Translations under genes and position numbers: made by a program | DNA from: Paragordius varius | Taxonomy: Eukaryota > Animalia > Nematomorpha | Assembly (NCBI GenBank): GCA_964247055.1 | Contig: OZ176055.1 | Coordinates: 3,658,001 to 3,722,000, forward strand | Reading direction: 5' to 3' | DNA: 64,000 bases | Part shown: piece by piece, positions 3,001 to 61,569 of the stretch | Position numbering within the stretch: position 1 is the first letter of the stretch | How the letters are laid out: every line of letters begins with the position of its first letter | Notes under the pieces: generated by a model | The model's input: the letters and a program-made list of their open reading frames with translations, nothing else | Told to the model about the DNA's origin: nothing | Databases searched by the model: none

Positions 3001-4002
3001 AAAAAAAACTAAATCTTTAGAATATGTGGATTAACTGAATATCGTCATAGTTATAAACGGTACTTGTATTGGATAATTTGAATATGATATGTTTATTGAT
3101 TTATTTAAAAATGAATTATATAATTATGATTATTCTTGAAAAAATTTCTAAAATACCTGAATGTTTTAGTGTAAAAAATATTTTTTCAACTATATCAAAA
3201 TATGAAACAAGGAATTTCAATTAATATGAAGTCAAAATACATTTTATTAAGGCGTGGAAATGACACGGCTTAAAACCAACCGATCGCTATGAGATTTACC
3301 GTTTTCGATAGGTAGAACCAATTTTCTTGGTTAAAATTTTTAAAAACCACCCTGTGCCCAATTTAATATTTTTAAAATCATAGTCTTATTTCAAAATTAA
3401 TTACACCTATGATCAGTTAATTTTTTATCAGGTTTCAAAGACCAGATTTTTACAATCTAAAAATATTAAAATAGTGAAATTAGGGATTATTCAAACATAT
3501 TGTCCATGTCTACCTGAGCATTGTGAATATTGATTTTGAAATCTGGATAATAGCAAAATTTTAGGATATATTCCATTTCCTTTTTCGTCATGTATCGGAG
3601 TTCATAAATATCGCACCAGTCACCATAGTTGTGAGGGGCTTCAAATTCAAACATAGCTTTAAAGTATTCCGAATTCAGAGCTAGAATAAATTTATGGACT
3701 AGATAGGATTGTTCTTCTACCTAATACATTATTTAAATTAAAATGACAAATAATTAAATATATCGGTTTTAAGAGCTTTTAAGACTTTTATAGACCCATT
3801 CAACTATAACGGTTCTTAAGAATGTTAAAAAAACATGGGCAAATCTAATATTATTAATATAAAAAGATTTTCTTTTTGCCGTAAAGAAATAAACCTGTAT
3901 TTTAAGATCACAAAATTCCTTATTCAACCGCATCTCATTCCATTTTGGATTAAAATCGGACTTCTTGGGAGGGATAGCCGAAGATTTTGGCCTAATTTCC
4001 AT
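1..4002 (-). CDS. KLHL10: Kelch-like protein 10-like (BTB-BACK-kelch Cullin-3 adaptor); 3' end lies outside the window
   Basis: Exons 4002-3895, 3720-3514, 2983-2807, 2336-1822, 1371-348 and 82-<1, all GT-AG and frame-consistent. BTB: VHKFILALNSEYFKAMF. BACK: AWNYMLKNF...LLKADELDLMHEELAFEGIVKWI. Kelch repeats: YTPRISSSVLLTVGGWSEGSP, YAMGGYDGRARLNTAECY, SNFACE|VVDDMIIVMGGFNGTTT. These match KLHL10-type motifs (GGWSGGSP, VVDDLLFVVGGFNG). Family is certain; the paralogue call is less so. Confidence 0.8.
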
Positions 4003-12481: not shown

Positions 12482-12841
12482 GTCATCTGTTCACTTTTTT
12501 TGTTATTTAAAAGGCGTGAAAAAGTTGGCTTTTGGAGAATAAAAAGGCATTTGTTTGGGTAGATTGTTTCACAAAACTGATTTATTGACCATTTGATAAT
12601 TTTTATACATCCATCGCCAAAAATCTTTTCATAAATATACTAAGGTTTTTTATTTATCTATAATTTCTCAGGCCTTTGTTTTTTTAATAAGAGTTATCCT
12701 AGTCATAATTAGAAAAATGAAATCGTATTATTATCACCTATATTTCAATTTTGAATTCAAAATATATTGAGTTTACGAACGCTGTCCCGGAAATGGTCGA
12801 AATAAGTTAAATAGTTATGAGGCAGTACTAAACATGAAATG

Positions 12842-17400: not shown

Positions 17401-20400
17401 AATAACTTACTTTTACGCGTAAATCTTTGAGCGGTTGAGGTAATAGAAGTCCTTTAATTGTTGTATGCATTGCGCCATCTATCGTGGCGAAAATCATAGT
17501 ATCTCCCTCTGTCATTGTCCCGTTTGTCAAAATGCAATCTAGCGTAGTTCCCATTCCAGTTATTTCTTTAACCTATAAATAATGCATATCTTAATATTTA
17601 AGGTGCCTGTAAATTACTCAAAATTTCAATAAAAATAATTTTTTGTCCTATAAAAGGTAACAGGTATTTTGTAAAATTAACCAGCATTTTTATTTTGAAA
17701 GGATAAAAAGGACAACAAAAATTTCATTTAATTGAAGCATAAAAAGGTTAATACTGATCAAATCAAATATACCAATCCATTAAATAGATTTATATATATA
17801 TATATATATTATAATATAACCATTAACATACCAAATATTTTTGGATACATTTCTTTTTAAAAACTATATTAATCAAAGTCAAACTTAAATTGTACTTTCA
17901 CTTTCATTAAAACATCCATACATAGGAAAATAACTTTTTTATACTTAGATAAAACACTATATTACCTCCAAAACACTGCATTCAACCGTATTGGGTAGGA
18001 AAGCCAGGGGATGTAAGTCTTCGCGTTTAGTATATTGACCAGTTTCCTTAGTTTTCACATAATTTGGAGGATTTGTAGCCAATTGTACCAGTTGGTATAT
18101 GAGTGTGGCCATTCCATCTCCACTGTGAGCCGAAGTAGGGACCATAGAAATGTATTCCCTACCATCTGGATTCGCATGATAAAGGCAAACGTTAACACCC
18201 TAATAACACAGATAACATACCATTCTTAAATTAAACTTATAATTAATATAAACAAATTTCTCGGTTTACATGTTATATTTAAGTTTGATATGGTTAAAAG
18301 ATTGAATATAGTCCCCAATTTGATTCGGTAGACTAAGTTTCATTCAAATATCTGATAACATAGTATGAAGAGAATGTACGATAACATGGCTAATAAATAT
18401 AAGTCAAACATATATTATATACGAAATTGGTGTGTCTAGGTAATCAATTTAACTATTATTAATATGGGTTCATTAATATTTCAATGGCCATAATTTTTAG
18501 TTTTTGTAATATCCTGCAATGTAATAGGATTGATTTTCTATATTATACGCCTTTACATTTCGCTATAAATGACTTCTCTATATTATTACAATTTGGATAC
18601 TTGTGAATAAGCATTCATTATATGTAAAATGTTTGACAAATAAAGTTGGCGTTTTAATACCGTTATTTTCATGCATATTATATTTTTTTTCGTTAATTAA
18701 AAATAAAGAAAAGAAATATATTCTAAAACTTTTAACTGCACAGGACAAAGGAAATTTTCTATGATATATATATATATATATATATTAGAAAATTTCTAAC
18801 TTGTTCAGCAAATTGTAACGTAACAGCCTTTAAGCGATCTTCAAATTCAAGCTTTACATTATTTGCCTGATTGCTTATGACAGTGTAAACATCATTTTTC
18901 GGATCAGTTTTCCATTGGTGTAATCGATCGATCTAAATTATATCAATATTTTAGTTTTCATCGTTTATATGTTTTCTAACATTACAGTAAAAAATAAATT
19001 TATATATTTAAACATAAATAAATACAAATATTATTTTATAAAAACAGTCATACTTTTTAAACCGTAATTTAGAAAGAACGTTATTGTGAAAAATATAATA
19101 GTGTGTTGCCATACGTCTCTGCTCCTTATTTTGCAACCCAAAAAGATAAATATTGAAATATAAGTTTTGAAAAAAATATTTTTATAAAAATCTCATAATT
19201 TTAATGTTTTGTTTTATAATTTCGATTTGTATTGTATATAAATTTGGTGTATATTGCTAAACTTTTTCAAATTAAAGAATAAAAGTTTGTGGAATGAAAA
19301 TTGAAAACATACCTTATTTAAAGCAACCAAAAAGGGTACATTTCGATCACGTAGTAAGCCCATGCTTTCAAGAGTTTGAGGTTCTAAACCATGCATAATA
19401 TCCACAACCAAAATAGCTGCATTGCACAAAGATGTTCCACGGGATCTTAAATTTCTTGAAATGAAATTAAAAAAATATATGTCAGAAAGGTTTTAAACAT
19501 TAAAATGCGTGTATTGTTTAAGATATAAACTATTTATATATAGTTGTTAAAATATGATATTTGGTGTTTTAACTTTATAAATGGTTATAAATAATATTTA
19601 TCATGGGCTATTTTCGATTATGGTACATTATGAAAAATTTTTAAAAACATTATTTTTGCAATCAAACTTATATATATACCATTTACAGTTCGAATTCACC
19701 CTTAAACAATTTAATTACACCCCAAACAATTCAATTTAAAATAAATTATGTGTTTTTTAAGATTAAATATTACCTACATTTTTTTATGTTTAAAAAAAGA
19801 AATTTTGCATGTAATAATACTAAAAAAATAGTAATGCCATAAAAATACATTTAATTTTAAAGATGAGTTATATTAGACCAAAATTTTATAATTTATTTTT
19901 AGCGTAAATTTAGATTGTTCGAGGTGAATTTGAATTGTTCAAAGGTGAATTCGAAATGTAAATGGCATAAATGAAAAATTATGATATTATAAAGATGCAT
20001 AAATTATTATTAATAATTGATGTAATGTAAATAACATTTATTAAAAGAGTTAAATAGTCTTATTTCCGCTGATATATGCAATGATGTTATATATTTTGCA
20101 TGTTTCAATTATGTAAAATTTATATATAAAAGCCAAACTCATACTTGAAAGATTCATGTCCAGGTGTGTCAATCAATAAGAAGCCAGGAATTTGCAATTC
20201 GGATTCTTTAAACTTCAATTATATAATAAAATTATCATTTAACCAATAAAATATAAATTCAAATTATTAAATAGATATATAAGATATCATTACTCTATAT
20301 TTATATTAAATCGTTATTCCAGAAAAAATGGCAATTAAAGTTATATTAAGGATTAAAATTGTATTTTATTATGAAAAAACTGTATTTTCATGATTATTTT

Positions 20401-23400
20401 ATAAACCTATATGATGACTGAGAAAAATATAATTGAGTGTTTATAACGCACTCTATAACGAAGTCTTAAAATCAAGGCTAAGAATAATACATTTTTCTAA
20501 AAAATAATAAAAATTTATCATATATTTTTTTCCTTTCAAATTATTATAATTTTATATCGTTAAAACATTCTTATTACATATTAAATATGGGCAAAATAAA
20601 AAAGTAAAAAGTAAAAATTTACATTGGTTATACATGAACAAGCTTGGCATATGGCCTCTCGTGGGACATTAGTTGCCCCAATTTGTTGGGTTATACCTCC
20701 GGCTTCGTTTTCTTGCACATTTGTGTTTCTTAACTTTTTAAAATTTAAACATTTTTAATTATTTTTTATGTTTATCTTGTATAAAAAAATTTATGTTATA
20801 TATCTTGTTTTAAATAAGGCATCAAATATCGTTAAAACAATTATTAAATATATTAATAACATATAAAGATAAACTGCACTTTTGATATATGACTGTTATA
20901 TTGTCTTATTAAAACAATCTCTGACTAAGATTTTTGGTGTAAATTATATTAAATTTTTTCCCATAACCCCCCAAACGATAAATAAAAATAAATTTGCCGT
21001 TAGCGCATTTTCATGCCCCGGCCAACACCGCGGGGAGGTGGCAATAGGACTTTGTTGGCCAATCATTTGTGATGGAGGATTTGATGGATAATATTAGGAC
21101 TCCATATTCGGAGTTTTGTATCCACGAAGTAATTTCCTCCATAAATTACGATCTTTACATTGTGCTGTGGAAAGGCTACGTTGATTCAAGTCCATTTTTA
21201 TATTATCATTATAAGAAAAGAGTTCTATTACCATCAACATTAATGTTTTAACAGTTTTTAAAGGATGGGTGGCGTCTCTTCTCTGAGTATGACCGTAGAG
21301 ACTCAATCTATTAGTTTGAATAATATAATCGATTTTGTCGGTTTTTTTAATAAATGTTGGTATTTCTGGGGTACGAAAGCAACTTTTGAGTATTCGGTTC
21401 TTACTAGTTAGGAGTTTTGTTTGATTAGTTTTGTTTAATGCCCAGGTTTCAGAACCATAGGTAAGAGCAGGTCTTATTCCTGCCTTGTAAACATACCATT
21501 TATTATGATTGTTAACATTTTTAATCGACCAAAGCTACTTAACATTGATGGACATAACATCGAATTGGTAGACTCGTTTGTTTACCTATGAGATGTCATT
21601 TCATCTCAGAGAAGCCCACAAAATGCTATCAAAAGAAGAATACAACAAGGTTGGATAAAATATAATCACTTAAAATATGTTTTCCAAAACAAAAATGTTA
21701 ACAATCATAATAAATGGTATCTTTACAAGGCAGGATTAAGACCTGTTCTTACCTATGGTTCTGAAACTTAGGCATTAAACAGAACTAATCAAACAAAACT
21801 CCTAACTAGTAAGAACAGAATACTCATAAGTTGCTTTCGTACCCTAGAAATACCAACATTCACTGTTGAAAACATTAATGTTGATGGTAATAGAAGAAAG
21901 GGACGACCACTCTTTTCTTATAATGATAATAGAAAAAGGACTTGAATCAACGTAGCCTTTCCACAGAACAATGTAAAGATCGTAATTTATGGAGGAAATT
22001 ACTTCGTAGATACAAAACTTCGAATATGGAGTCTTAATATTATCTATCCAATCTTCCATCACAAATGATTTTCGACCAAACTTGATAAGATTCACATAGA
22101 ATTTTGAAATTATAAACATAAAATACCTTATCTAATAACTTTGTTTTTCCCGTATCGACATGACCCATTATACACACAACTGGAGATCGAAGTGCACCAT
22201 TCCAATGCTTAATATCTTGAAATTTTGCTAACTTAATAATGTAATGAAAAAAAATTATGCAGGGATATATTCTAAAAATATTATTGGAAAACTTTGTAAG
22301 CAAAATAAAAACCTCAATTCGTTCCTTGATGCTTGTTACATTATCCGGGGGAGAAATACCTATTATGATACATAAAAACTCTTTAATATTTATTAAACAA
22401 AATGTTGGTACCAACTTTAAAGATAATAAAAACAAATTTTATTTAATGAAAATTAGAATTCTCTCAAAATATATAGTAATGTAAAGAGGCCAATTTTGAT
22501 GCTTGAGAGTATGTTTATTTTTGAAAAAAAAATAAAATATTATACTTAATCCATATAACGAAAAAAAATACCAATTTTATACAAGAGGTTTCTGACAATA
22601 TAAAAAAAATTGAATAACTTCAAACCTATATGATGAGGAGTAGAAATAGTTAAATGTTCCATTTTTTGATTATTCATATCATTAGTGTCTTGGGTGGTTG
22701 AGGGTTCCTGTTTTTGACTACTAGATTCATTGCTTGAATCCGCAGACTCTAATGAAGGAACTGATGAGGTAACTTCCCAATCACTCATAATACCATCTAT
22801 TATGTGTTATATTTCACTTAAAAAAATTGTAAAAATATTGTAAGAGTGTTTAAAAATAATTCTTAATTGGTATATAATGGAGAACTAAGTTCATAAACAT
22901 GGAATATAGAGCCCAATAATTTAAAAGTTATCAAATTAACAAAAATAGGAATGAAAAATAATTCTTAGAATGCATTTTATAATGGAGATAAACCTAAGAT
23001 CATAAAAATATTGGAATATTTTGGCATCGTTATCAAAACTTTAGGGATATTGGATGTAGTGATAAAAATTAGATCCTAATAGAAACCATAATATAATAAT
23101 AGATTTGTGTATTTAAACTATATGAAAAATAGATGGTTTAAATTATAGATTGCAATGTAAATATCAGTCTTATTAAAACCTCTTTTAACGATCCCACTTT
23201 TTCATTCATCGCCACACATTTTTTAACGACTCTAAAAAATTTCTTTAAAACTTTTTTAAATGTTTACCCGATTCTGATTGTTCCTCACTCTTTTCATCTG
23301 TTTCACTTTGTGATTCGATGTCATCATCCAATTTAGCTTCCAAAGCGCCATCATTTTGAATTTCTGTTTGTTCTTTTTTGTCCTCCATTTTGTTGGTTGG

Positions 23401-25767
23401 TAATTCTTTACTATTCGCATTGTCACCTTCTTGACTTTGTTTAGTTGTTGTGTGATTACGTTTTTTCCTATGATCATAAATGACACGTTTTTTGGGCGCA
23501 GTTTGTGATGACTCTACCAAGCTACCATCATCGTTAGTGGTGACATGATTAGAAGTTATTTGTAAACCTTTTTTAATATATAATGACAAATGATTGACAT
23601 AGGGGATTAAAAGAAGAATGTTTTGAAAATATAAATTGGCAAAAAACTCAATATGGGTAAAATATTTTTTTAATTTTGGCAATGTAATTTCGATAGAATA
23701 TAAAAAGAAATATATTGTTACATTTGAAAAAGTCATGTTTTTATATAACTTATATACGATTGTAAAATATTTGAGTATATAACCAATTTACAAATCCATA
23801 ACAACTTAATTAATATAAATTTAAAATTTTCCTAAAAAAAATTTTTTTATTTACATTAAGAGCAGGGATGTTTAACACAAATAAGAGAAATTTTAATTAC
23901 AAAATTTAAATAATCATTGGAAATTTTGGTAAGGAACTAGCAAAAAAATGTTAAAACAAAAAGCTCATATTTAAAATCCAATAATAAGTTTGATAATGCC
24001 AATATAATTTAAGAATGCGGCCCGCCGAATTTTTTAACCCTAAAAATGCGGCCCGTGAAGCCAATTGTATTGTACAGCCCTGGCTTAAAGTGTAAATTAG
24101 ATTTTCGGATATAATAAAAAATATACTATTTACAGTTCAAATTCACCCTTGAACAATTCAACACTCTCGAACATTTCAAATTCACCCTATGTGTTTTCTA
24201 GCTAATATAACTCATCATTAATATGAAATAAAAATTTTCTACATAGTTTAATATTTTTTCAGTATTATTTAAATTTAAAACAAAAATTTATATTTAAAAC
24301 ATATATAAAAATATGGGTAATTTTTAATCATAAAAAATATATAATTTATTTGAGGGGTAATTTGAATTGTTTAAGGGTGAATTTGAATCGTAAATGGTAA
24401 ATGAAAATCATTAAAATTTTTTGTGACATTGTAATACTTTGTTGTTTCATGGATTCAAATAAGGCCACAGCTTTTTCCCTCGCCAATTTTTGGGCTTTCG
24501 TTAAAAGTTTGCCTTCAGCTTTGAGTTTTTCTTTGCGTTCTTTTTCTTTTTGCCGTTTTCGTTCTTTTCTCTCTTCTTCCAATCGTATCTATAAAAAGAA
24601 ATTATTCGATTAAAATATATGTATAAAAGTAATATTTAAAGATAAAAATATTTAACATCTGGTTGGGATGCAAACTCTCACTTATAGAGGTGAAAATTGG
24701 TAAGCTCAATTATATATATATATAATTATAAGATTATAATTTTTATCATTTAGGTTATATATTAAAAAAAAACAAGTCTAATCAAAACAATCTACTCTTA
24801 GTTTTTACAAAAGGTGATCCAACTAACTCCACGCGGAAGAGCAGTAAGACTTTTAATGCTTTTTCAAAAAGTTTTTACCGGAAATATTGAATAACAATGA
24901 TCAAAATATTTAATTAATAGGTTATGCTAAAAAATTTTTAATAAAAAGTATTCAATTTTATGAGATAATTAACTTTTTCAAGTCTTTGTTGTTCAGCCTC
25001 TTCCTCGGCACGGATTTTGGCTTGCTCGGCTTCTTCGAAGGCTCGTTCCTCTTCCTCACGCCTTTTCAATGCTTCTTTCAACAAAGCCAACTAAGACAAT
25101 GTATATTAAACAAATACTCTTAAAAATTCACAGTAATGTGTAGTGTAAAATATAACTGAGCTAGAATAATATATGGCAAAAATTGATATAATCTTATTTT
25201 CATAACTTGCAATGCAATAAAAATTTTACCGTTGCATAGAAAATCGAATAATCTAAATAGAGCGCAAAAAAATGCAAATGGCTAAATCTTAATTTTTTAA
25301 TAAGGTATTAAATAAAATTGTCTATGTACTAATCATTAAATTATAATCAACTATAAAAGATTTAAAAGATAATTCGGTATCACGTAATAAATATTATGTA
25401 AGAATCACCTGGGCCTTATTCAATTTCTTTTTCCCATCATCTTTTTTGTCACCGGTATCTTTTTTCTTGGCGTCTTTTTTCTTTTTTTCAGTTTTGCCTT
25501 TTTTATCTGGTTCTTCGGAATTTGTTGTTTTCTCAGGTATTAAATCATTTGTGATATTACTGGAGATAGTCTTATTGGCGATTTTATCTAAAACTTAATA
25601 TATTTCGTACCATTAACAGTTATATTATTATCATCTTTAACCGGAACATTTTGTTTTGGTTTTTCTTTTTTAGGTTTCTCCTTTTTTTTCTTCTTTTTTC
25701 TCTCATCTTCTTCGCTTTCCAAGCCCTTTAAATATTCGGCTTCTTGTTCAGCGTCTACTTCCAACAT
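14436..25767 (-). CDS. EIF5B: Eukaryotic translation initiation factor 5B, 999 aa
   Basis: 21 exons: 25767-25611, 25587-25409, 25090-24974, 24588-24438, 23567-23268, 22796-22626, 22359-22313, 22231-22127, 20733-20623, 20212-20145, 19454-19313, 18932-18801, 18199-17966, 17572-17411, 17041-16910, 16352-16221, 16130-16054, 15940-15811, 15738-15562, 15266-15099, 14543-14436. Total 3000 nt, in frame. G-domain motifs [57 protein letters not shown]. Later domains [42 protein letters not shown]. The start ATG is preceded by an in-frame TAA. Confidence 0.97.
19677..19967. mobile_element. MITE family A, copy 2 (eIF5B intron)
   Basis: taccatttacagttcgaattcacccttaaacaatt ... ggtgaattcgaaatgtaaatggca; homologous to 9524-9855. 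Confidence 0.7.
21061..22070. repeat. Long inverted repeat built from an RTE-type LINE 3' fragment, in eIF5B intron 8
   Basis: Arms 21061-21522 and 21691-22070 are reverse complements with high visible identity. The + strand 21545-22040 translates, with stops, to RT C-terminal motifs: [53 protein letters not shown]. Confidence 0.85.
23863..24082. mobile_element. Short degenerate hAT MITE (CAGGG...GCGGCCCG...CCCTG)
   Basis: Termini cagggatgtttaac and gtacagccctg, with two subterminal aatgcggcccg motifs typical of Charlie-type hAT ends. TSD imperfect. Confidence 0.4.
24124..24399. mobile_element. MITE family A, copy 3 (eIF5B intron)
   Basis: tactatttacagttcaaattcacccttgaacaattc ... gggtgaatttgaatcgtaaatggta; homologous to copies 1 and 2. 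Confidence 0.7.
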
Positions 25768-25891
25768 TTGGTTTTAACTTTTTATGAAATACCAGCAAAC
25801 ACCTATAAATGTATTTATTATAATTTTAATTGGGAAACAATCAATACTGGATGTGAAAAAAGTAAGGAAGATACCGCTTATTTTTATACAT

Positions 25892-39924: not shown

Positions 39925-42900
39925 AGCAATCAATTTTACATCCCAAGACCGCAGGATTGTAGAGGAAGGGATTGCACAAATTCAAGATGCTCCTGCATAG
40001 GTGAAAAAGGATCTCGAGTACGTTGATTGTATTAATAAATAACCCTCGACCCAACCGATAATTTTTTATATTGAATAAATTACCAACTATTTAACCAACC
40101 AACTATTAAAATACATTTAACCCCAATTAACTGTGACGTAATAACTTTCCATTTTCTATTGCCGTTCTAAATTAAAACTATGTAATTCAACAATCACTAA
40201 TTTATGTCGAGCGCAAACGTAATGTGCACGTAATAAATATTTTGTGCATATTACATAATGTTTTGAAACATTTGTGAAACACAACACAAATGTGCTAACA
40301 ATTTTTTGGAGATGACAAAAAATCCAAATATTGTCTAGGGTATTCCGGGAGCCCCTGGTCCACAAGGTTTTCAGGGACCCCTTGGAGCTGCTGGGGAATT
40401 TGGGATTGAAGGCATAAAAGGTCAAAAAGGTGAAATTGGTGCACCTGGTCCTATGGGACCTAAAGGAGATCGGGTAAGTCGCTTATTAACACACATGATA
40501 TTATTTTACAAAACTGGAGTTAATTTTTGACATTATAATGGATTTCATTTTTCTAGCAGTAATAAAATAGTTTGCATGACTTATTTTAGAGCGATAAATG
40601 ATATTTTATATTGTATTTACCAAAATTTACTAGGGTAAAATGGGAATGCCTGGTTTTCCCGGTCTCAATGGAATTCCGGGAATACAAGGATCTCCGGGAT
40701 TACGCGGGTTCCCAGGCGCAGATGGTTGCAATGGAACCGACGTAAGTGGATTTCTACATAATAATAATATTAGGCCGGTTTTTTCCATACTGGTTTATGA
40801 CTTGTAGTTTTTTGGAATATATGATTTTGGAGTACTTTAAAAGCCCAATGCGCAAATTAAAAACGGTCCGTATTGGATTATAATTATAGCTTGTATGATT
40901 ATAAAATAATACTTTAAGCGTAATTATTAACTAATTTACTTTAATTCAATCATATATGTTTATTTGTTAATGTTAACATTATATGTCAATTTTTTTTGTA
41001 TAATTAACATATTTTCTCACTAAAAATAATCCATTTCAAACCATTTACGTTTTTGCCTCATTAGCCATAAATATCTAAAGGAACATAGTATTTATTAACG
41101 TAAGAAACAAATAATGATATTAAAACATTTATATTTTTACATATTTGGAAAAAATAACAGGGATTTATGGGTCTGCCAGGGTTACCTGGACCTCCAGGTC
41201 TTCTTGGCTTGCCGGGAAATCCCGGTCTCAAGGGTCTAAAGGGAGATCCTGCTTTCGTAAGGGAATCTGCTGCTGGCCTTAAAGGTGATTTGGGACGTGA
41301 TGGAATATCTGGTTTACCGGTATCTTTTTACTATTGCATAGATTTAATTTTACAATTTTTATATGAAGGAATAATTATATAAATTTTTTATTTAATATTT
41401 GTTTAAATCACATAATGAAAATTAAAAATAATCCTGTTGATTTATTTTAACAAAGGGTCTTCCTGGATTGGATGGTTCCATGGGACCCAAAGGTGATTTG
41501 GGCGCCCCAGGATTCCCAGGTCCTATAGGAAATAAAGGACCCCGAGGTGATGAAGGAAATATGGGTATTGGTTTATGGGGAGAAAAAGGAGATTTGGTAA
41601 TTTTTCATTAATGCATATTTTGACAAATTTTCTAATACTAATTTTAAGTAATTTCCCATTTTCATATACATTCATGTCATGTTTAGGGTGATCATGGCCC
41701 TCCTGGAGCGCCAGGACCCCCCGGTGATTACCAATATCAACAAGGGGTCGAAAATTTGTTTGAAGGTCCTCGTGGTCCACCAGGAGATATGGGTTACCGT
41801 GGCGATGCCGGAGATAACGGTGCTCCAGGCTATGAAGGACCTATGGGAAAACCGGTATAAAATGATTTGACTCCAATGATTGACAAACATTTTACCTAAA
41901 CTTAATTAAATATTAAAACTTTTTTGCTAAATTATTTCCTATTATTATTATGTTGCCAGGGTCTACCTGGATTACGAGGTGCCAAAGGTGAAAAGGGCAA
42001 TGAAGGACCTATCGGAAAAACGGTATATATTGGAAGTTATTTGTAATTTATTTTTAAAAAAATTAAATGATTTATATAAATTTAAACATCATTTTTAGGG
42101 AAAAGAAGGACGTGTTGGCCTATACGGACCACCTGGCCTAAAGGTATTAATTTAATATTGGATTAAATCGTTAATGATTATATTTAATTGAAACATTTTA
42201 TAGACGGTGTTTTTTTGAAGTTTAACCGGGCCATATTTTTAAAAATAGCCTTGCAAATAATATATGAATAAATTATTTAAATTTTAATAATATTATAAAT
42301 TTTTTTAGATATTTCATGATTAATACAATTTTATATTAATTTGATATTTAACTTAGGGTGATCGCGGCGATGACGGGTTTCCAGGAGTCGATGGTATTCC
42401 TGGCGAAAATGGTTTGAGAGGTGATCCAGGACCTGATGGTCGCCCTGGAATTTTGGGCGCTCCTGGCGTGGCTGGGGTATCCCGATTATTCAATATTTTA
42501 CATCTGAAAAATTTTAATTATATTTTAAAATTTGTCCTAGTACTATTTTGTAAAAATAATTATAATTAAATTATTATAACTTAATGTTTGTTGTATCTAA
42601 TCTATGCAACAAAAATCAGTAATTTATAATATTTATTTGTTAAAATGACAAATTAAAAATAGTAAAATCACAAAACTACTCGTTTCAAATGTATGAAAAG
42701 TGTATTTTTTCAAGGAGATAAAATGAATGATTAAAAAATAATTTCTATACTGTAAAAATATTATTTTTGATATTGTTAATATTGCTGTCCTGATTATCGT
42801 ATTATTATGCATTGGCATTTTACAATATTAAAACCAAAATAAAATGCATTTTAGAGCGATGATGGACGCGTCGGTCCACCAGGACCAGTCGGAGCTATGG

Positions 42901-45900
42901 GAATGCCTGGTCGCCCCGGATTTCCGGGCTTAGAAGGAAATCCCGGTTTTCCAGGTTCGCGCGGACCAGTCGGTCCCGCAGGAGCCCCTGGTTTATTGGG
43001 TCACCCAGGGTTACAGGGAGTTCCTTCTGAAAAAGGGGAACGTGGAGATTCCGGATTACCGGGTATGATTATCACTTAACTTTTTACAGTATGAGTAACT
43101 ATTCATGCTAGCTTTTTTTATTAAACGTTGCCAGATAGCATATACAGCAAAGAGCATTCATATTTGTGGATAACATGATAAAATTAATAATATAACTTTA
43201 AACCCAAAAAAATATGTTCTTTGTTGTACGTGCGATCTGGCCATAATTAATGAGAAACTAGCAATATTTACCCATTATATAATATGTGAATGCAAATTTT
43301 TTTGATATCGCTATCATTAATCTGATATATGCTGCTCCAAGGTATACCTGGAACTCAAGGACCTCCTGGAGTTGGGGGCCCTGCTGGGGCCAAAGGCGAA
43401 ATCGGAGATGTTGGCCTGCCTGGTCAAGGTATTATGGGGCCTCCAGGTATGGATGGGCTCCCGGGATTAGATGGTGTCCCTGGTGCCAAAGGAGAGAGAG
43501 GATATGACGGTCCACCAGGTTTGTCTTTTAAAAATATTTGTTAAAAATCAAAGGAAAATTATATACTGCCAAGTATTTGTGGCACATGGTTGCAATCAAT
43601 GAGACTTTAAGAATTAGTATCATTTTATAAGGATACAATTGTGTAAGATTTGGATATTTAGCCCTCTTATATATAAATTTCTATCTATCTTTCACATGAT
43701 CTTTGGAGTTTAATAAATTTATAATATATTTTGCAAAGGTTATTCTGGAGACATTATTGATGGTGTACCTGGACCTCTTGGTATTCCTGGCCCTAAGGGA
43801 GAATCCGGATACCCTGGATTAAATGGTCGACCTGGCCCAATGGGACCACCAGGTCAAAAAGGTACGAAGCAATTTATGCAGAATATATCAAATTTAAAAA
43901 AAAAAGATTGTGATTATAATAACATTATATCATTATTTTGTGTTTAAATGCTTGTTTATCCGTATTTTAGGTGACCCGGGAGGTACATGTCAATTTTGTC
44001 GATCAGGGGACAGAGGTCGTAAAGGGGAATCCGGATCAGCTGGTTTTCCCGGCAAACAAGGTGAACGTGGTTCTCCGGGAGACATTGGTGAAATAGGTGA
44101 GCAAGGCGATGATGGTGATGCTGGAATCCCAGGACGACCGGGATATTCCGTAATTTAAATTGAAATAATAAAATATTTTGGAGCCGAATGATAAAACATA
44201 TATTATGCTATAAAAATTATTTAAAGGATAACTCATTTTAGCCAATACTTAAAATTTTATGACGATTAAACCAAATTATTTAATTTAAAGGGACAACCCG
44301 GTTTGGATGGATTAAATGGGATCCCTGGAACCAAGGGTGAACCAGCTGTCATCGACTATTCTCGATTACAAAGTTATCGGGGTAAAAATATCACTTTAAT
44401 TGCTAGTTAAATTTGAACCTCTTAAGTTTAGTGATAATATTAGCAACTTGTTTTAATGATGATCTATAATAATATAAATTGTCAGGAGAGAAAGGAGATG
44501 CCGGATATCCTGGACTTCCAGGAGCCCCTGGAATGGACGGTCAACCTGGATTGCCGGGCCCACCTGGAATTGCTTTTGGTTCTTCACTAAATCTTAAAGG
44601 GCCGCAGGTATGGCTATCATTCACAATATTTTATAATTACAATTTTAATTTTACTAAGTTTTTTGAGGATATGAATCTAATATCGATTAATAAATTTAAT
44701 AATCTCCATCGATCGATCATTCATCAAAAAATTTTTTAAACCAAAGCTTCTAAGTTTAACATAGTTTGATCTAGCATTAATCAACACAACTTTTTTTCTA
44801 ATGTTGATATCTCTTTTCCACAAACCACATATTAATTCGTGTTGGATATAGGGAGATGCAGGATCACCTGGAAGAGATGGTTTCCCAGGTTTATCTGGTC
44901 TCCCCGGTATGCCGGGCGCTAAAGGCGATCCAGGTTATGCCATTGGTGGCAGCCCAGGAATGGCCGGAGAACCCGGAAGCCCTGGATTACCTGGGCTCGA
45001 TGGGATGGCTGGTGCACCTGGAGAACCAGGTAATTATTGAAAATGTATTAAAAAATATTCTTTTGTCAGAGGCTCTATTAACATAATTATTCGTTTCATA
45101 GGGAAGAAGTCACGATTTCTTATTGATTAAAACAAGCTAATTTATTGCTTGTACTGAGTTTGTATAAAAAATGCTTTTTTTAAAAAAAAATCTTACCATT
45201 ATTGAAAAAGTAATGAATAAACAATAAGTTATGAAAAGTTTCTTACATCTAAAATTGTAAAATGTTGTATTAAAAATGCCAAATTGGAAATGACTCCTTT
45301 TAAAACGAGTCGGACCATTTTTAACCAGTCAAAAATTGATTCTATTACATTTATTACCACTGTATAAAATGACTCAAAATGAAATGGATTTAAATATATA
45401 TTCTTTTTTGCAGGAGAATTAATTGGCCGTGGATTACCAGGAATGCCAGGTCTTAAAGGTTTGCGAGGGGATGACGGTTTACCAGGACTCCCCGGCCTGC
45501 CGGGAGAAGATGGTCGTCCAGGTTTAGATGGACTCCCTGGGACTCAAGGTAATCCTGGAGCCGACGCCACACCCAATATTGTCGGACCAAAAGGTATGCA
45601 TTTTACCTTTATTTTTTATGCTTATGTTTCCATAAAAAAATGGTATTATTAATAAAAAATTACTATAAGCATTAACCAGCCAACGGGGTGAGTACACGTC
45701 GCCCGTGGTTCAATATGGGAGATATATATTACAATGGATATATTCTCATTTCTTTATCATATGCACAAAAGCTTATTCATGCTTTAACAATTTTTTATAT
45801 ATAATCTGCATTAAACCATATTTATTTTTTGATAAACAGGTTTACCTGGACCAAGAGGAGATCCTGGCCTTGACGGTTTCCCTGGCTTAAACGGAGCCAA

Positions 45901-47046
45901 TGGTGAAAGAGGGCTACCTGGACTTCCAGGTCTTCAAGGATTCAAAGGTAATCCATTTTATTAACAATTTTTTCACTCCATTTAATGTTGGATACACAGA
46001 GTTATTAAATGAACATTAATATCTGAATAACTTTCCCTATTTATTTGATCTATAAATTTCTATATTTCTGGTTCTAAGGTGAATTGGGAGATCCTGGTAT
46101 AGCGAGCTCGGTACAACCCCAACCCGGTTTACCCGGATTTAATGGGTTAAAGGGTGAACAAGGAGATCCAGGATACCCCGGATTAGACGGTATGGTTATA
46201 ATATTTTTATGATTAGTAGTCAATTTTGAATTATTTTGCCTAACAAAATTTTTAAGAGTTTGCAGTACTAATTTTTATTTCTAGGGTTACCTGGAATGCC
46301 TGGACTCCCTGGTGAAAGAGGATTTCCTGGACTGGCTGGCAAACCAGGCCTGCCCGGTGCACCTGGTATAAAGGGTGATCGAGGTTTAGACGGGTATGGT
46401 GAGCCCGGAGCTTCTGGCGGAAAGGGTCCCGATGGGTTAGCAGGTTTAAATGCCGATAAAATATTTTTTTTTTATATTATGAAATAGTAAATAAACGCTT
46501 TCACTAACGCATTATTATACACAAATAATCTTTTAAAGTAATAATTCGTTATGCTTGTTATAATTGTTTAAATAGCTGTTAATTTCTTGCTAAATATATT
46601 CATAGTATGTTTTTTATGTTACTATCATTACTTAGGCTGTAAACATTATGAAACCGAATTCTTTAAAGAATATTTGCATAAATAATTCAATTATTACTAA
46701 AATGCTTTTATACACCAAGGTTTACCTGGTTTCCCTGGCGGAAAAGGAGAACGCGGCACGCCTGGACCCAACGGACCTCAAGGTGCCCCTGGAGATAATG
46801 GAAATCCTGGAGCACCTGGCATCGATGGCCTACCTGGTCTACCAGGTACCCCTGGCTTAGATGGTTTCCCAGGATTACCTGGTCTTGCAGGTATAACTAA
46901 CATTTTTTCTTCCTTTGACTGTTGGAAATATATTTTTGGAAAATAAAGCATGCCGCATACGTTATGAATGTAATGGGTTGAAAAATAACCCTATTATCAA
47001 TATATATATATATATATATGTATATATGTAGAGCTGTTTTTGATGC

Positions 47047-47080
<34 letters not shown>

Positions 47081-50000
47081 CTTTATTTACCTATTGCAAA
47101 CATTTTGGAACTTCTAGGTCAAAAGGGTGAATTAGGAGATGCTGGTGCCCCTGGAACTCCAGGTCGCCGTGGGAACGATGGATTGCCCGGTCTTAACGGA
47201 CCCCGAGGTGAAAACGGATATGTTGGCCAACCTGGGTTACCAGGACTCCCCGGGTTAATGGGTAAAATCTATAAAAAAATTTATATGGTATTATATTCTA
47301 CTTTCAAATTTATTTTTTGGTAATTATTTTTGTAAAAAATATTATTTGTATAATCCTCATATTTTTAGGGTTGAAAGGAGACAGTGGTTATCCGGGGTTA
47401 CCCGGTGGTCCCGGAGCTCCAGGAAAAGCAGGAGCTCCTGGCCTCCTTGGTGAAGCAGGTGTACCTGGATACCCAGGTGCAAAAGGAATGGCTGGAGCAA
47501 ATGGTATTTTATTCAATTTTAATTTGATATCAATGGTTTAATTGCTTGCAAATAATTACTATTATAATTTATGATTTCAAGCCCTGTTAGTATGCTAAAC
47601 GTCAAAACAAGATTCAATTCATAATAAACCATATTTTCTTAATTGGATCATAAATTATGCTGAGATGATTTAATTTTTTATTGAAAACTAATCAACGTTG
47701 CTGCTTTTAAATGGAAAATGACATAACCTAGCGCAAATATTTGATTGTAGGTTCTCCCGGATACAATGGCGCGAAAGGTGAGAGAGGAGATTCCTTCCCA
47801 GGTGCCAATGGGATGGATGGGGCCCCTGGTCTTCCAGGTTTAGATGGAGCCCCTGGAGTCCCAGGAATGGCTGGGCTAGTTGGCGATCCTGGTGCATCTG
47901 GAACACCTGGAGCTAGAGGCCCTGCTGTAAAATATTTACTCCATTTTTTATTAGTTACATAGCTAATATTAATAAATATTATACAATTTTGGAAAATTTT
48001 AAACCATGCTATCCAACGTTAAAGTAATTGTATTGTAGTGCTATGCTAATTTTTTTATAAGCCATAAGCAAGTGTTGAGGGGTTAAAGTAATCATATCGT
48101 TGGTTTAGGGTGATAGTGGAATCAATGGAGCGCCAGGTATACCTGGGGAAGATGGTTTCTCCGGTCCAAAAGGCGAAGTTGGTGCTGAAGGAATGCCAGG
48201 GACACCGGGTGCAAAAGGCCCATCTGGAGATACTGGCATAGCTGGTACACCTGGCCGAAAAGGAGAATCAGGTCTGAATGGCATGCCAGGTCTTGACGGT
48301 TTCCCTGGCCTGATGGGCGAAAAGGGAGAAGCGGGATTACCGGGAATGCGTAAGTGTAATTTGATTCGGCTTCATTGTTAAAAATAGCATGCGCGTATTG
48401 AACAAATAATGTTTGTTTACATTTATATCCTTTTCTTTGTACAGCCGATTTTGTGGGTGGTCCACCCGGAGCCGATGGCTTACCTGGATTCCCAGGTCTT
48501 GCAGGAGGACCTGGACAGCGAGGTGATGATGGGTACCCTGGCCCCGGTGGGGCGAAAGGGGAATCCGGATCAGACGGCTATTCTGGAGCGTCAGGAAAAA
48601 TGGGAGCTATGGGTCCGATGGGGCCTCCCGGGCCCCAAGGAAAGCCTGGTTTACCAGGTATTCCTGGTTCCTCTGTAAATGGAGCCCCGGGAAATCCCGG
48701 TTTACCTGGAGCCGATGGTGCACCAGGCCTAAGAGGCGATAGAGGTATGTAAAAGCCTAATCTTATATTTTGTCCCAATATTAATTTTTTGGAAAATATG
48801 TCTTTTAAACACGATAAAAGTGTTTGGTAACGGAATCATATACTATATTAATCCTATTTATTTCAGGTGATCCTGGATATGATGGTAAACCCGGGGCGCC
48901 AGGGTTTGCATACGATGGTGGTCCCGGAACTCCAGGAACCCCTGGACCAGTAGGTGATTCTGGTCTCCCCGGTCTTCCTGGTGAAACAGGGCCACAAGGA
49001 GCTCCGGGAGACGATGGGCTTCCTGGACTAAACGGACTTAAGGGTCCGGCCGGAGAGCCTGGATTTTCAACCGCTTCCGCACCAGGTCCAATTGGTGCCC
49101 CAGGTATGACAATATAACAATTTTGAAACCGAATATTTATTATTTATAGAAACTTTATTGTCGTTATTTTACTATGTTGTTGCATAAATAAAATTACCTA
49201 TATGATTGCTATCTTATAGGCCAACCGGGATCCAATGGATATCCGGGTGATAGCGGTTTCCCGGGGTTAGAAGGTCTTCCTGGACTGCCTGGAGCCCCAG
49301 GTCTTCCAGGTGATCCTGGATTCCCAGGATTGGATGGTTTGCCCGGAAAACAAGGTTAATACACAAAACAAATTATTGCGAAGACAACTTTTCTGATTGA
49401 CTAATTTTAATGTGTATTTTTTTTATAAGAAAAACATATTATTTATTTATTTTCCATAAACCAAAAAATATTAATTTCCTAATTTAAACTAAAAATATGT
49501 TTTTTATATAATTTTTGGTCAGGTCGGGATGGAGCTCCAGGAATGCCCGGCGAACCAGGAATAATACCTGCTAGCGGCCAATTGATTGGACCTAAGGGGG
49601 TTCCCGGTGACGATGGTTTTATGGGCTTACCTGGTTTACCGGGACCCGATGGGTATCCTGGAGTAGCAGGAACGCCTGGTAAGTAACTTTTTTTGTTCAT
49701 AAGATATAGTGTAAATATTAAATATTTGATAAATATTACTGTCCTTAAAAGAATTTTAGCATGAAATTTAATTATTTATTCTTAGTTGTTAATGATTAAA
49801 TAATCCATCTTTACCAAACGATAGTTTTAATTTTTCAAATAATTTAAGCATTTTTGTAGACATATTAATTCAATGCAAATTCCTTTTTAGCAGTATAATA
49901 ATTTTTTCCAATCATATGCTACTTTATGTTAGGTATTAAGGGAGAAATCGGACTTCCTGGAATCGAAGGTCTGCCCGGTTTACCGGGAAGTTTCGGAGAA

Positions 50001-51660
50001 CGTGGAGATCCAGGACGACCTGGTTCAGCTGGCCTACAAGGATCTCCAGGTACACATTTTGATTTGTAATAGACTCTATAATCAGACAAAATAAAATTTT
50101 AGCTTTATACCTCAAGTTGTTCCTTTCTTTAGACAATTTAAGTTTATTAGTTGTATTTATTTATTTTATCAATTTTAAACTAATATCCTTATTTATAATA
50201 TTTCTTTCAATTCAAAATCATGATTTTCATCAAAAATATTTTTTTAATCATAAAAACAGTTTTTTTTATCATAGACTAACTTAAAAATTTTTTTGGACCT
50301 AAATGTTACAGGATTTTAAAAGCAAATGGTATAGTTCATTTTTTAACATTTTTTTCCCAAAGAATTTATGCAAATTTGAATGTAATTTATATATATAATA
50401 ATTTAAGGCCCACCAGGATATCCTGGATCTGCAGGTCCGCAAGGAGCCGCTGGTGAGGAAACACCTCTCGGCTTTTTGTACGCTAAACACAGTCAAACCC
50501 CTGATGTGCCACAATGCCCTCCAGGCCAAACAAAGTTATGGGATGGTTACAGTTTGTTATACTTTGAAGGGAATGAAAAAGCCCATAACCAAGATCTTGG
50601 TATTATTCAATTAATACTTATATATTGTTCATCAATACAATTTATTATTATTATTGTTTGAATCATAGGTATTAACTCATGCAAATGTATAATCGTATAG
50701 GATTATAAGCCTAAATTTTAACTTTCTTTATAATGACATTATATGTAAAAAAGGCAACTATATTTGCGAAATGTGATGTTGGATAAATTTGTAGTTACAT
50801 GATTTATGTTTTAATAGGCTCTGCTGGTTCCTGTGTGCGACATTTCAATACTATGCCCTTCCTATTTTGTGGAACTAACAATATTTGCGATTATGCCACT
50901 CGCAATGATAAATCGTATTGGCTTTCAACATCAGCCCCTATTCCCATGGTACCAGTAGGGGATAGTCAAATAAAACCACACGTTAGTAAATGTGCCGTGT
51001 GTGAAAGCCCATCCAACATTCTTGCTGTCCATAGTCAATCGCTGAAAATACCGGATTGTCCTCCAGGATGGACCGGATTGTGGAATGGTTACAGTTTTAC
51101 CATGGTATTATTTTGGTTTTTTATTTATTTCACAACATCTCCTAAAAAATATTTTTACGGATTTTTAAATATACATATAATTTTAAACTCTACATTACTT
51201 TTTAATGTTCCTTGATTTTTTCAGTTTATTATCATGATTTGTAAAGGAGTGGTCTACTTTTGAGGGGATTTCTCTAATCATTTCATGTTGTTTTCATTAC
51301 GCTATCTAAAATAAGCTTTTTTAGATCCCCCCTTTCTTGAAAAATTTTGTCTAGATTGTTTTTTAAAAAAATGAGTTAAAAGTATATCATTTAAATTTTT
51401 AGCACACAGCGGCTGGTGGCGAAGGAGGCGGCCAAGTTTTATCTAGTCCTGGGAGTTGTTTGGAAGATTTCCGCACAACGCCCTTCATTGAATGTAATGG
51501 GGCACGTGGTACTTGTCATTACTTTGCTAACAAATTTAGTTTTTGGTTAACTACGGTGGATGATGATAAACAATTTCAAAAACCGGTCCCAGAAACAGTA
51601 AAATCCGGTAATCTACGATCCAAAGTAGGCCGTTGTCAAGTCTGCCAAAAAGTGGTTTAA
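39925..51660 (+). CDS. COL4A2: Type IV collagen alpha chain with alpha2-class NC1 (COL4A2/4/6-like), about 1740 aa; signal-peptide exon not located
   Basis: 33 exons: 39925-40017, 40339-40473, 40634-40741, 41161-41319, 41456-41596, 41687-41854, 41960-42022, 42099-42143, 42357-42476, 42855-43062, 43342-43518, 43739-43861, 43971-44149, 44291-44381, 44486-44607, 44852-45029, 45414-45593, 45840-45947, 46079-46189, 46285-46443, 46720-46890, 47118-47261, 47369-47503, 47751-47926, 48109-48349, 48445-48744, 48867-49103, 49220-49354, 49523-49678, 49933-50049, 50408-50599, 50818-51104, 51403-51660. 7S region [20 protein letters not shown] and GADGCNGT. Interrupted Gly-X-Y with TCQFC and about 10 RGD motifs. 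NC1 motifs [46 protein letters not shown] are the vertebrate alpha2-type signatures. Invertebrate naming of such chains varies between alpha1 and alpha2. Confidence 0.95.
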
Positions 51661-54800: not shown

Positions 54801-55008
54801 CCAAAAAATTAGATTTTACAAAAATATTGCTTTATGAGCATTATCATAATTAAACTATAATCACTGATATATGTATTAAAATTATTATAACAAATATTAA
54901 AAATTATTATAAGAGAACAAATATAATATATTTCAAATAATATTAAAAAATATATTGGCATTTTCTCACAACATAAATTATTGCACATAATCTGATTCTA
55001 CGCGTGCT

Positions 55009-58902
<3,894 letters not shown>

Positions 58903-59529
58903 TTTCGCAAAGCCTTTTTTTGTAATAAATACTTTTGGTAAATGGTTCATATTTGTAAATGTTCAGGGTCTTAAATGCCGAAAAATTATATAAAAAATAA
59001 GCGAGAAATCGGATGACAAGTCTTTATATATATTTATATATACGCTTTATTGCTGGACAATAGATGTAATAGTAGCGTATTTGATAAAACATGTATAAAC
59101 AAATTTTATGTTGTAAGGTTAATTTTACCCATTTGTTGTGTTTCTGTTAGTGTTGTACGCTATATTGCCATTATCTAAAAATAATGTGATTAAGTCAAGA
59201 ATTAGTACCGATCAAATGTTAACGTTTAGAAGGGGAATAGTACAGTATGAATAAATCTTTTGTTTTCTTTTTTGGCAATAATTAATAACTTTCTAGCAAT
59301 GTATACTTACACATACTGTATATTAACGACCATAGGCAATTAATTCATTTATCAATCACGCTTGGAATTGTCATTTTTAGAAAATGCGATAAAAACACCG
59401 TTTGACGACTTATATGCATTTCTAAAACCCTTACAACAAATTTTGAGTTTCATCTATAAATTTTTAAAATTGATTTTATAATTAATCATAATAAAACAAA
59501 AATTTTATAACCATAACTCCTAATTTTTT

Positions 59530-60100
59530 CAACAATATGCCATACATAATCTCAAAGATAATAAATATCGCAAGTATCTGGGAAATCCATTCCATCCATT
59601 TAACACCCTGCCTATCTCTGAAAGGCGGAAAAATTGCCAACTCCAAACTATCAAAAATTAAATTTAAAGCATTCGATATCCCAACACTGACCTACCACCT
59701 GCGCCTTAACAATTTTAATTATCTAATCAGTAATAAACTTGGCCTATAATAAATACCTATATTTTTAAAAAAAATTGCTTTTCAAGAACGTCACGAATAA
59801 TAACTCATTTTTGCAAGAAAATATGACGCCCTTGACCCCACATGAAAGAGGATTTCCACATCTTTTGTCTGGACGCTGCATTTAAGCTTTTAAAAAGCGT
59901 AATAGGTAAAGGGGAACTCAACAACACAATAGTAAAGCTTTTAAAACACCTATCCCAACTGCCGTAATATAATTATCTTTTAGGGGATCTTAATAATCAA
60001 TGGATAAATTAACAGCAAAATTTGGACCCTGGCAAGGTCTTTCAAACCACCTCGATTGTAAAATGTGTGGCGCCCTTCCATCCATTTCAATCAGCATAGA
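59530..60100 (+). mobile_element. Degraded non-LTR retroelement fragment (tentative)
   Basis: One frame reads LKDNKYRKYLGNPF...KFKAFDIPTLTYHLRL, with a YLG motif like RT domain 7 and the downstream region. Raised GC. Confidence 0.4.
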
Positions 60101-60552
60101 TTAATGCTGTTTTAAAGCATTTAATGGTCGCCAATAAATATTAAAACAAAAAAAGATAAAGAATTTTACCATGCCAATTAGGACGTATCATGCTATGCGT
60201 TGCCCTCGAGAAAGCATTTCATCATTTTTTATTTAATGAGTGACACAAGTTTTTCAAGCAATTAAATTTTGCCTAAATCAAAACATATAATATAAAATTG
60301 ATTCCCTTTCAAAATAAAAAATAATTTCAGAGAATCAACGAGTTTGTTTTCGCCTACGACTTTCTAATTATAGCAAATGTTCAAAACTGTTATATATTCG
60401 ATCCAACCATACCATATGATAATAGAGAAGCATTAACAAATTAACCGAAACAGGGTTTAAAGTAAAAACATATATTAAAGTAGCAAGAATCACGTAGAGC
60501 GTAAAATTTTATGCAATACCAATAAGGATTTTAATTTGTTTTCTAATAAAAT

Positions 60553-60717
60553 AGGCGGTAAGCGCGAACGCAAACCGCCAACACCCACAAATTATGCGCT
60601 TAACGTATCCCAATTTGGGATAGTTATAGCCATCAGCAAAACCGAAGTGCAATGGTTAGCCTCAAACTAGGTGGTTTGCCTTCATGATCGCAAAACGCGC
60701 CCGCGCCAAGTAAGTGA
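60553..60717 (-). ncRNA. RNU1: U1 spliceosomal snRNA with variant 5' end (ACUUACUUG)
   Basis: Minus strand: tcACTTACTTG GCGC GGGCGCGTTTTGC GATCATGAAG GCAAACCACCT AGTTTGAGGCTAACC ATTGCAC TTC GGTTTTGCTGATGGCT ATAACTATCCC AAAT TGGGATACGTTAA GCGC ATAATTTGTG GGTGTT GGCGGTTTGCG TTCG CGCTTACCGCCt. It has the U1-70K loop, the U1A loop AUUGCAC, the Sm site AAUUUGUG and stem-loop IV with a UUCG tetraloop; length about 165 nt. Confidence 0.95.
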
Positions 60718-60761
60718 TTAAATATGTTAGGAATGCATATTATAACTTAATAAGTTTGTTT

Positions 60762-60781
60762 GATGGCAGGCGTTAGGCACA
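60762..60781 (-). promoter_or_regulatory. Candidate snRNA proximal sequence element (PSE)
   Basis: A GC-richer 20-mer (tgtgcctaacgcctgccatc) lies about 45-64 nt upstream of U1 +1 in otherwise very AT-rich DNA. Position fits a PSE; motif identity is unverified. Confidence 0.3.
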
Positions 60782-61569
60782 AATTATTTATAATAAATTG
60801 GTAAAAATATTTACTGCAACGTTTTAATTATGCATTAATATAATATTTAATCAATTAATAAATTCTTTGATAAAATATCAGGGTATAAATTTTTTTTTAT
60901 AAATAATTTATTTTAATAGAGGGCGCATATGTATACATTGATGTGTATATTTGCGAATGATATTTACCGAGATGTATGTTATAAACAAAAATAACAAGTA
61001 GTGGCAAATAAACAATTTTTCTCTATACTATTTTTCTTATTAAAATATATAAGGATTATTTACACTATGCGCTACTTATATATAATATTGTAAACAATAA
61101 AAAAAATCTCTGTAAAATAAGGTAAAAATAAAGTTAAGTAATTTATTCTCATTTTCGCCAAAAGCACCGCAGGATATTCTAAAAATATACAGTTGCGTAT
61201 GGCATTAAACAAAATGTTAATATAAAAAAGATGAGGATATGTTTAATACAGACAATATAAACTGTGCACATTTAATTTCTTTGCGATAGAATATTGTAAA
61301 AATAATAAAGAAACATCCAAATTTCTTAAAAATAAAACTTTCAATCCGTAATGTTAATTGGGTTATAACAACGTATGGTTATTTAACGAGTATAATACAA
61401 TAAAATAGAGATGTATGTTAAATTAAGGTAAAATATTTAATTTCGCATCCTATTAATTTTAACTAATCTGATAATTTTGTTATTATACTTGATTTAAACC
61501 GTTTTCATCATCTGAAGTTTCTAATAAACTAAGTCTTTTCTGATTCTGGGTTTCGCAACCCATTCTTTC

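Follow-up and report, generated by a model that had tools for sequence, protein, structure and literature searches.

A structurally intact U1 snRNA gene of Paragordius varius carries uridine at the position that reads the last base of the exon

Genes and features of the window

The window (the whole stretch of DNA that was analysed, 64,000 nucleotides in length) contains one U1 small nuclear RNA (snRNA) gene together with a KLHL10-like gene, an AAR2-like gene and the genes of eIF5B, collagen IV and PSMC6 (Table 1). The genome has a GC content of 25–37% (approximately 28%). The best matches of the KLHL10 protein, at 32–47% identity, are to bilaterians, and no close relative was found in the protein collection. 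The collagen IV gene is an ab initio model, in which about 1,700 residues of Gly-X-Y repeats are followed by an NC1 domain at the end; the model has about 30 introns of 60–384 nt, which lie mostly in phase 1 and split Gly codons.

The introns of the window span a wide range of lengths within single genes. Three introns of PSMC6, all within positions 55091–55285, measure 25, 24 and 26 nt, and the short introns of eIF5B measure 23 nt (25588–25610, recovered with three of six homologues) and 42 nt (18047–18088). Both genes also possess introns of 300–1,400 nt. A 2026 study, which examined U2 and not U1, reports introns shorter than 30 nt only for myxobolid myxozoans and Dicyema japonicum and describes 5′ splice-site logos that have shrunk to GTa (PMC13644364). 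A 1.4-kb intron of eIF5B (20734–22126) holds a match to the HDV-like ribozyme drz-agam-1 (20968–21060, minus strand) with a score of 35.9 bits, just below the gathering score of 37, and the match adjoins fragments of a non-LTR reverse transcriptase (approximately 21097–21942) within the same intron. Very high-copy short repeats are present at 59269–59323, with a summed contig depth of approximately 430,000, and at 57600–58000, with approximately 140,000, compared with approximately 500 for a single-copy haplotype; loose contig ends occur by the hundreds at 59269–59324.

Table 1 Genes, U1 elements and related U1 loci, with the basis of each assignment. Positions are those of the window, except in the last row, where they are those of the metagenome loci.
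Feature	Positions	Strand	Basis
KLHL10-like gene	about 5–4000	−	Homologues
AAR2-like gene (U5 snRNP assembly factor), four open segments	11139–12490	−	By eye
eIF5B	14439–25770	−	Spliced alignment of homologues
Collagen IV	40348–51642	+	Ab initio model
PSMC6	55011–58899	+	Conserved protein frame
U1 snRNA gene	60553–60717	−	Rfam RF00003; fold; transcript may begin at A60718 or A60719, 1–2 nt upstream
5′ splice-site recognition arm ACUUACUUG	60707–60715	−	Sequence and Rfam alignment
Atypical leader AAUC before ACUUAC (conserved: AU)	60716–60719	−	Sequence; Rfam sets UC against consensus AU
SL-I loop GAUCAUGAAG, U1-70K site	60680–60689	−	Agrees with Rfam consensus GAUCAaGAAG
SL-II loop core AUUGCAC, U1A site	60647–60653	−	Same as Rfam consensus; invariant in alignment A1
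SL-III	60601–60626	−	Rfam alignment and fold
Sm site AAUUUGUGG	60585–60593	−	Rfam alignment; consensus-like
SL-IV, GGCGG/CCGCC and GCG-UUCG-CGC	60554–60579	−	Rfam alignment and fold
Candidate proximal sequence element GTGCCTAACGCCTGCCATC	60762–60780 (−62 to −44)	−	GC content
Type B U1 loci in metagenome contigs	L007:1052–1211, L012:411–570, L006:515–675, L008:967–1127, L016:8721–8882, L017:9322–9483; also L009, L013, L023, L025, L026		

Structure of the U1 gene

U1 is the sole snRNA detected in the 64-kb window with Rfam release 15, and it is represented by a single match to RF00003 (114.4 bits; gathering score, 69.5; E value, 4e-28). The match spans model positions 1–166 and is thus full-length, which places the gene in the U1 family by its covariance model. 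No further U1 was found in the window at the gathering score or at E ≤ 1, and comparison of the gene with the window by blastn gave no additional fragments of it.

The four-way junction formed by helix H, SL-I, SL-II and SL-III, and the 3′ SL-IV, can be traced in the Rfam alignment with every helix present. In both the alignment and the fold, helix H is GCGC/GCGC, SL-III comprises ten base pairs (UAAC-UAUCCC / GGGAUA-C-GUUA, with one C bulged), and SL-IV is GGCGG(U)/(A)CCGCC, closed by GCG-UUCG-CGC. The minimum-energy structure contains helix H, SL-III and SL-IV, and the z-score of the fold is −2.8. In the Rfam register, two pairs in the lower part of SL-I are non-standard (C.C and C.A). The U1-70K loop, the U1A loop and the Sm site are all present and agree with the Rfam consensus. 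These results bear out the first-pass annotation, which had described the stems GCGC/GCGC, UAUCCC/GGGAUA and GGCGG/CCGCC as preserved and the three protein-binding sites as intact. Its argument that compensated stems speak against a long-dead pseudogene likewise holds, with the Rfam match, the fold and the sequencing contigs (see below) identifying a real and structurally intact gene.

The gene therefore resembles the canonical metazoan U1 (RF00003) in its length of about 165 nt, in the four-way junction followed by SL-IV, and in its ACUUAC core, U1-70K and U1A loops and Sm site. It departs from the canonical form in three respects: U replaces C at the partner of exon position −1, the leader is (A)UC rather than AU, and lower SL-I is irregular. 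The RNA starts ..AAUC-ACUUAC-U-UGG. Within the single-stranded 5′ arm, the ACUUAC core (60715–60710), which pairs with intron positions +1 to +6, is intact, and the U at 60709 aligns with consensus C9. The family typically has C at both positions 8 and 9 (ACUUACCUG), the partners of intron +1 and exon −1, respectively; here C8 is present and position 9 is U. C9 is a conserved base, and not one that defines the U1 family. The leader is UC, and would be AUC or AAUC with a transcription start at A60718 or A60719. In the literature searched, no description was found of a U1 with ACUUACUUG or its DNA or leader variants.

Of all 19-mers in the 300 nt that precede the gene, GTGCCTAACGCCTGCCATC has the highest GC content (63%, compared with 22% overall). 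This block sits where metazoan snRNA genes have their proximal sequence element (PSE; near −55), and we take it, by its position, to be a candidate PSE. There is no clear 3′ box downstream of the gene. Sequence words of the U1 were found in no RNA-labelled run; one such run (X6) has no contig anywhere on positions 55001–61000, the housekeeping gene there being likewise uncovered. The U1 gene is probably transcribed.

U1 genes with U9 in other eukaryotes

The U1 5′ arm is among the most conserved of eukaryotic RNA sequences. The first-pass annotation had called the canonical 5′ end near-invariant, which proved to be an overstatement when JGI metagenome contigs were scanned for ACTTACTTGG..GATCANGAAGG: C9U is present in Rfam-grade U1 genes at at least 14 of the 26 loci that were recovered. 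The 12 other loci have no Rfam-grade U1. Eight of them were re-scanned at E ≤ 0.01 (L011, L014, L020 and L024 were left out), and L010 alone is U1-like (46 bits); the remaining seven pattern matches appear chance-like.

At ten of the metagenome loci, a U1 that starts AAACUUACUUGG, and thus combines C9U with U2A, lies beside a canonical U1 that starts AUACUUACCUGG. These genes, termed type B here, are often part of SSU-5.8S-LSU-U5-U1-U1′-U2 units or lie beside 5S genes. Across six diverged type B U1s, the first 14 nt are invariant, and double compensatory changes are seen at 16 of the 47 stem pairs. An invariant 5′ end combined with covarying stems means that purifying selection acts on C9U U1s elsewhere, and a functional U9 U1 is therefore plausible. 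The C9U paralogues beside canonical U1s suggest that a U1 with U9 represents a recurrent, selectable state, and not a lethal one.

The type B U1s share with the window U1 the same C9U change in an otherwise intact U1. Unlike the window U1, they start AAACUUACUUGG and always lie beside a canonical AUACUUACCUGG U1; they belong to unrelated eukaryotes and are not close to it in sequence. A separate locus (L001:2063–2224) has a U1 of 151 bits that reads AUACUUACUUGG and is canonical except for C9U, with no second U1 on its 3-kb contig.

Copies, sequence types and haplotypes

The reading that we favour, with a probability of about one half, is that U9 is shared by the genome's intact U1 genes as their working state and is not a fault in a single one of them; U9 would then presumably be fixed. 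Logan contigs of four sequencing runs, placed on positions 55001–61000 of the window, bear on this reading and on its alternatives.

In run X2, the depth of one haplotype is approximately 400–540, and that of the U1 body is approximately 10,000–11,000, which indicates about ten U1-like copies per haploid genome. The window copy accounts for approximately 10% of the U1 depth in X2 and is thus a minority sequence type. At five or more sites (60588, 60608, 60619, 60620 and 60631), a different letter makes up 85–90% of the X2 depth, including A>G at 60620 and T>C at 60608, and all of the X3 depth; for C>T at 60588 the X2 count is 5,383 of 6,431. Written as RNA, the majority type has A87, C98, U99, G110 and A130, and the window copy has U98, C99, A110 and G130. 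The change G87A converts a U.G pair to U-A in the majority type, and where the window copy has the SL-III pair U98-A110, the majority type has C98-G110. The latter is a compensated change, from which it follows that both U1 types evolve under structural constraint; the window copy is of the minority type, yet it is not decayed. The window copy's diagnostic letters are on no contig of run X3 (sample S2). The 31-mer shares in X1 and X3 (0.39) are compatible with either C9 or U9 in the majority type.

The window gene might instead be a functional but specialized or minor isoform, which would act on certain donors only (those of A-ending exons, for instance) or in a particular stage or tissue, beside a canonical C9 U1 that does most of the splicing. 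Its minority status among the roughly ten U1-like copies is in keeping with such a role, and the conserved C9U U1s that adjoin a canonical U1 in 10 metagenome contigs mean that a two-type system must be taken seriously here. There is also a human parallel: variant U1s (vU1) whose 5′ arm has one to three changes are expressed and become part of snRNPs and spliceosomes, although they are rare, and far below canonical U1 in the U1 snRNP (PMC8457000). Human vU1 and the window U1 are both altered in the 5′ splice-site recognition sequence, but the human variants coexist with abundant canonical U1, whereas no canonical copy is present in the 64-kb window. Moreover, it is the window copy that retains the canonical Sm site AAUUUGUGG, while the G130A change makes this site AAUUUAUGG in the majority type. 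We consider the minor-isoform explanation less likely than the reading favoured above.

The sample contains a second, very divergent haplotype, whose letters depart from those of the window at 60520 and, one base past the 3′ end of U1, at 60552. Within 60691–60970, this haplotype differs from the window by about 30 letters and four gaps, and the contigs of both haplotypes start at 60691, as expected if each overlaps a shared node by 30 letters. Window-type letters in the U1 body have a depth of approximately 1,047, equivalent to about two haplotypes of approximately 400–450 each. The shared node and the two-haplotype depth together indicate that the U1 gene was conserved while its flanks diverged by approximately 10%, and this conservation points to purifying selection or homogenization. 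Over the whole of 55001–61000, the second haplotype (or strain) is 2–4% divergent in places and at least 10% divergent in some intergenic stretches, such as 57201–57631 and 60691–60970.

Conservation of this kind weighs against the possibility that the window gene goes untranscribed or has recently been silenced. Such a copy would still resemble U1 only because of its youth or of gene conversion with its paralogues, and its C9U would be a neutral C-to-T change under strong AT pressure. A genome of 28% GC offers a setting for such a change, and the two non-standard pairs in lower SL-I and the atypical leader also speak for it. We nevertheless regard silencing as improbable: no functional site is damaged, the Sm site has the canonical form that the majority type lacks, and the promoter-like block is suitably spaced from the gene. 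Least probable by far is an assembly or sequencing error at 60709, a base that the first-pass annotation had wanted confirmed from reads: an X2 contig over 60691–60970 that includes the U at 60709, and a 151-nt record of run X5 over 60645–60795, both have zero differences from the window, so that error-free contigs of two studies agree and an assembly error is excluded for practical purposes.

Run X5 belongs to another study and is labelled as another organism. Its 151-nt records equal the window at low depth (approximately 2) between 57602 and 60795, and they may originate from a host sample, a mislabelled sample or cross-contamination.

Donor sites of the window

The preferred reading, in which U9 is the working state of U1 in this genome, was considered alongside the donor sites of the window itself. 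Introns were located with a custom protein-to-DNA spliced aligner, using six full-length homologues of eIF5B and eight of KLHL10 as queries, and were accepted if found with at least four of the six eIF5B or at least six of the eight KLHL10 homologues. Nine PSMC6 junctions were read by eye against the highly conserved protein frame. The verified set comprises the 29 donors of the eIF5B, KLHL10 and PSMC6 introns, all from this window. An ab initio exon-chaining gene finder was dropped for donor statistics, its controls having scored 35–40 and its training having been captured by the collagen gene.

Among the 29 verified donors, the last exon base (−1) is G in 15, A in 11, T in two and C in one. 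Exon position −2 is A in 22 of the 29, intron position +3 is A in 19 and T in eight, and +6 is T in 21; +5 is G in just seven. As a background, the third codon positions of eIF5B have frequencies of 0.37 for A, 0.145 for C, 0.148 for G and 0.337 for T. In the phase-0 donors (n = 21), exon −1 is G in 11, A in eight, and T and C in one each; relative to the background, G is enriched 3.5-fold, A is unchanged (1.0-fold) and T is depleted sevenfold (0.14-fold). The departure from the background has a chi-square P value of 7e-6, and the difference between A and T a P value of 0.027 in this small sample. In the ab initio model of collagen IV, the ten phase-0 donors have G in eight cases, C in one and T in one, and none has A.

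Duplex energies were calculated with RNAduplex for both forms of the arm. The U9 arm gives −3.6 kcal/mol for A-ending exons and −3.35 kcal/mol for G-ending exons, and the corresponding values for the C9 arm are −1.8 and −6.0 kcal/mol. U9 brings the two donor classes close together, with a small loss in mean duplex energy (−3.2 for U9, −3.8 for C9).

With C9, as in human, A at exon −1 is disfavoured to the same degree as T. In AT-rich genomes with a canonical U1, position −1 can be A-rich too, and loop 1 of U5 also favours purines at the end of the exon. Acceptance of A and G and avoidance of pyrimidines at exon −1 fit the pattern expected of pairing with U. The first-pass annotation had proposed that U9, by pairing with A or G at −1, re-tunes donor recognition. 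The exon ends of the window accord with such pairing in being A-rich, with 11 of the 29 donors ending in A and two in T, although the two bases are about equally frequent at third positions. A preference for A does not emerge, as G is still the commonest exon end and the phase-0 donors of collagen IV lack A, and donor recognition is thus relaxed at most, not switched to A. A re-tuning of donor recognition is compatible with these data but not demonstrated by them.

Discussion

If U9 is indeed the working state of the intact U1 genes in this genome, the U1 snRNP would otherwise be expected to work as usual, with the ACUUAC core pairing with intron starts that resemble GUAAGU, and with the U1-70K, U1A and Sm sites in service. 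U9 would pair with A at exon −1 as a Watson–Crick pair or with G as a wobble pair, and U10 would still pair with the strongly kept A at exon −2. With an intron-side signal as weak as that at +5 and with exons ending in A or G, U9 would give both kinds of donor a similar duplex energy, whereas a C9 arm would favour G-ending exons and penalize A-ending ones. U9 may carry a selective benefit.

A bolder form of this reading, which we advance tentatively and at slightly less than even odds, is that every working U1 of the lineage reads the last exon base with U. The change would have co-evolved with the broadening of donors to AR|GUA, with the near-loss of G at +5 and with introns of 22–26 nt, and U9-type U1s would have arisen independently elsewhere, where they were kept beside a canonical U1. 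If true, this would be the first metazoan with a changed splice-site-reading base in its main U1.

Lineage-level changes of the U1 arm are, to our knowledge, on record for just a few amoebozoans, where they are confined to the intron-pairing core. The lineage-wide arms are ACAAAC in Entamoeba, ACGUAC in Mastigamoeba and, ambiguously, ACAUAC in Physarum, and in the Entamoeba type the arm and the lineage's donor consensus have changed in concert (bioRxiv 10.1101/2022.06.08.495308). The changes in these three genera affect the core and are matched by a sharp new donor consensus. In the window U1, unlike the Entamoeba type, the change lies at an exon-pairing position, the core is untouched, and the donor signal is at most broadened to A or G.

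An animal with a functional U9 U1, if that is what the window gene represents, would be a natural experiment on the weight of the exon-side U1 contact in the choice of donors. Such an animal would also inform the co-evolution of splice signals and snRNAs under AT mutation pressure, as well as the recognition of very weak donors and ultra-short introns.
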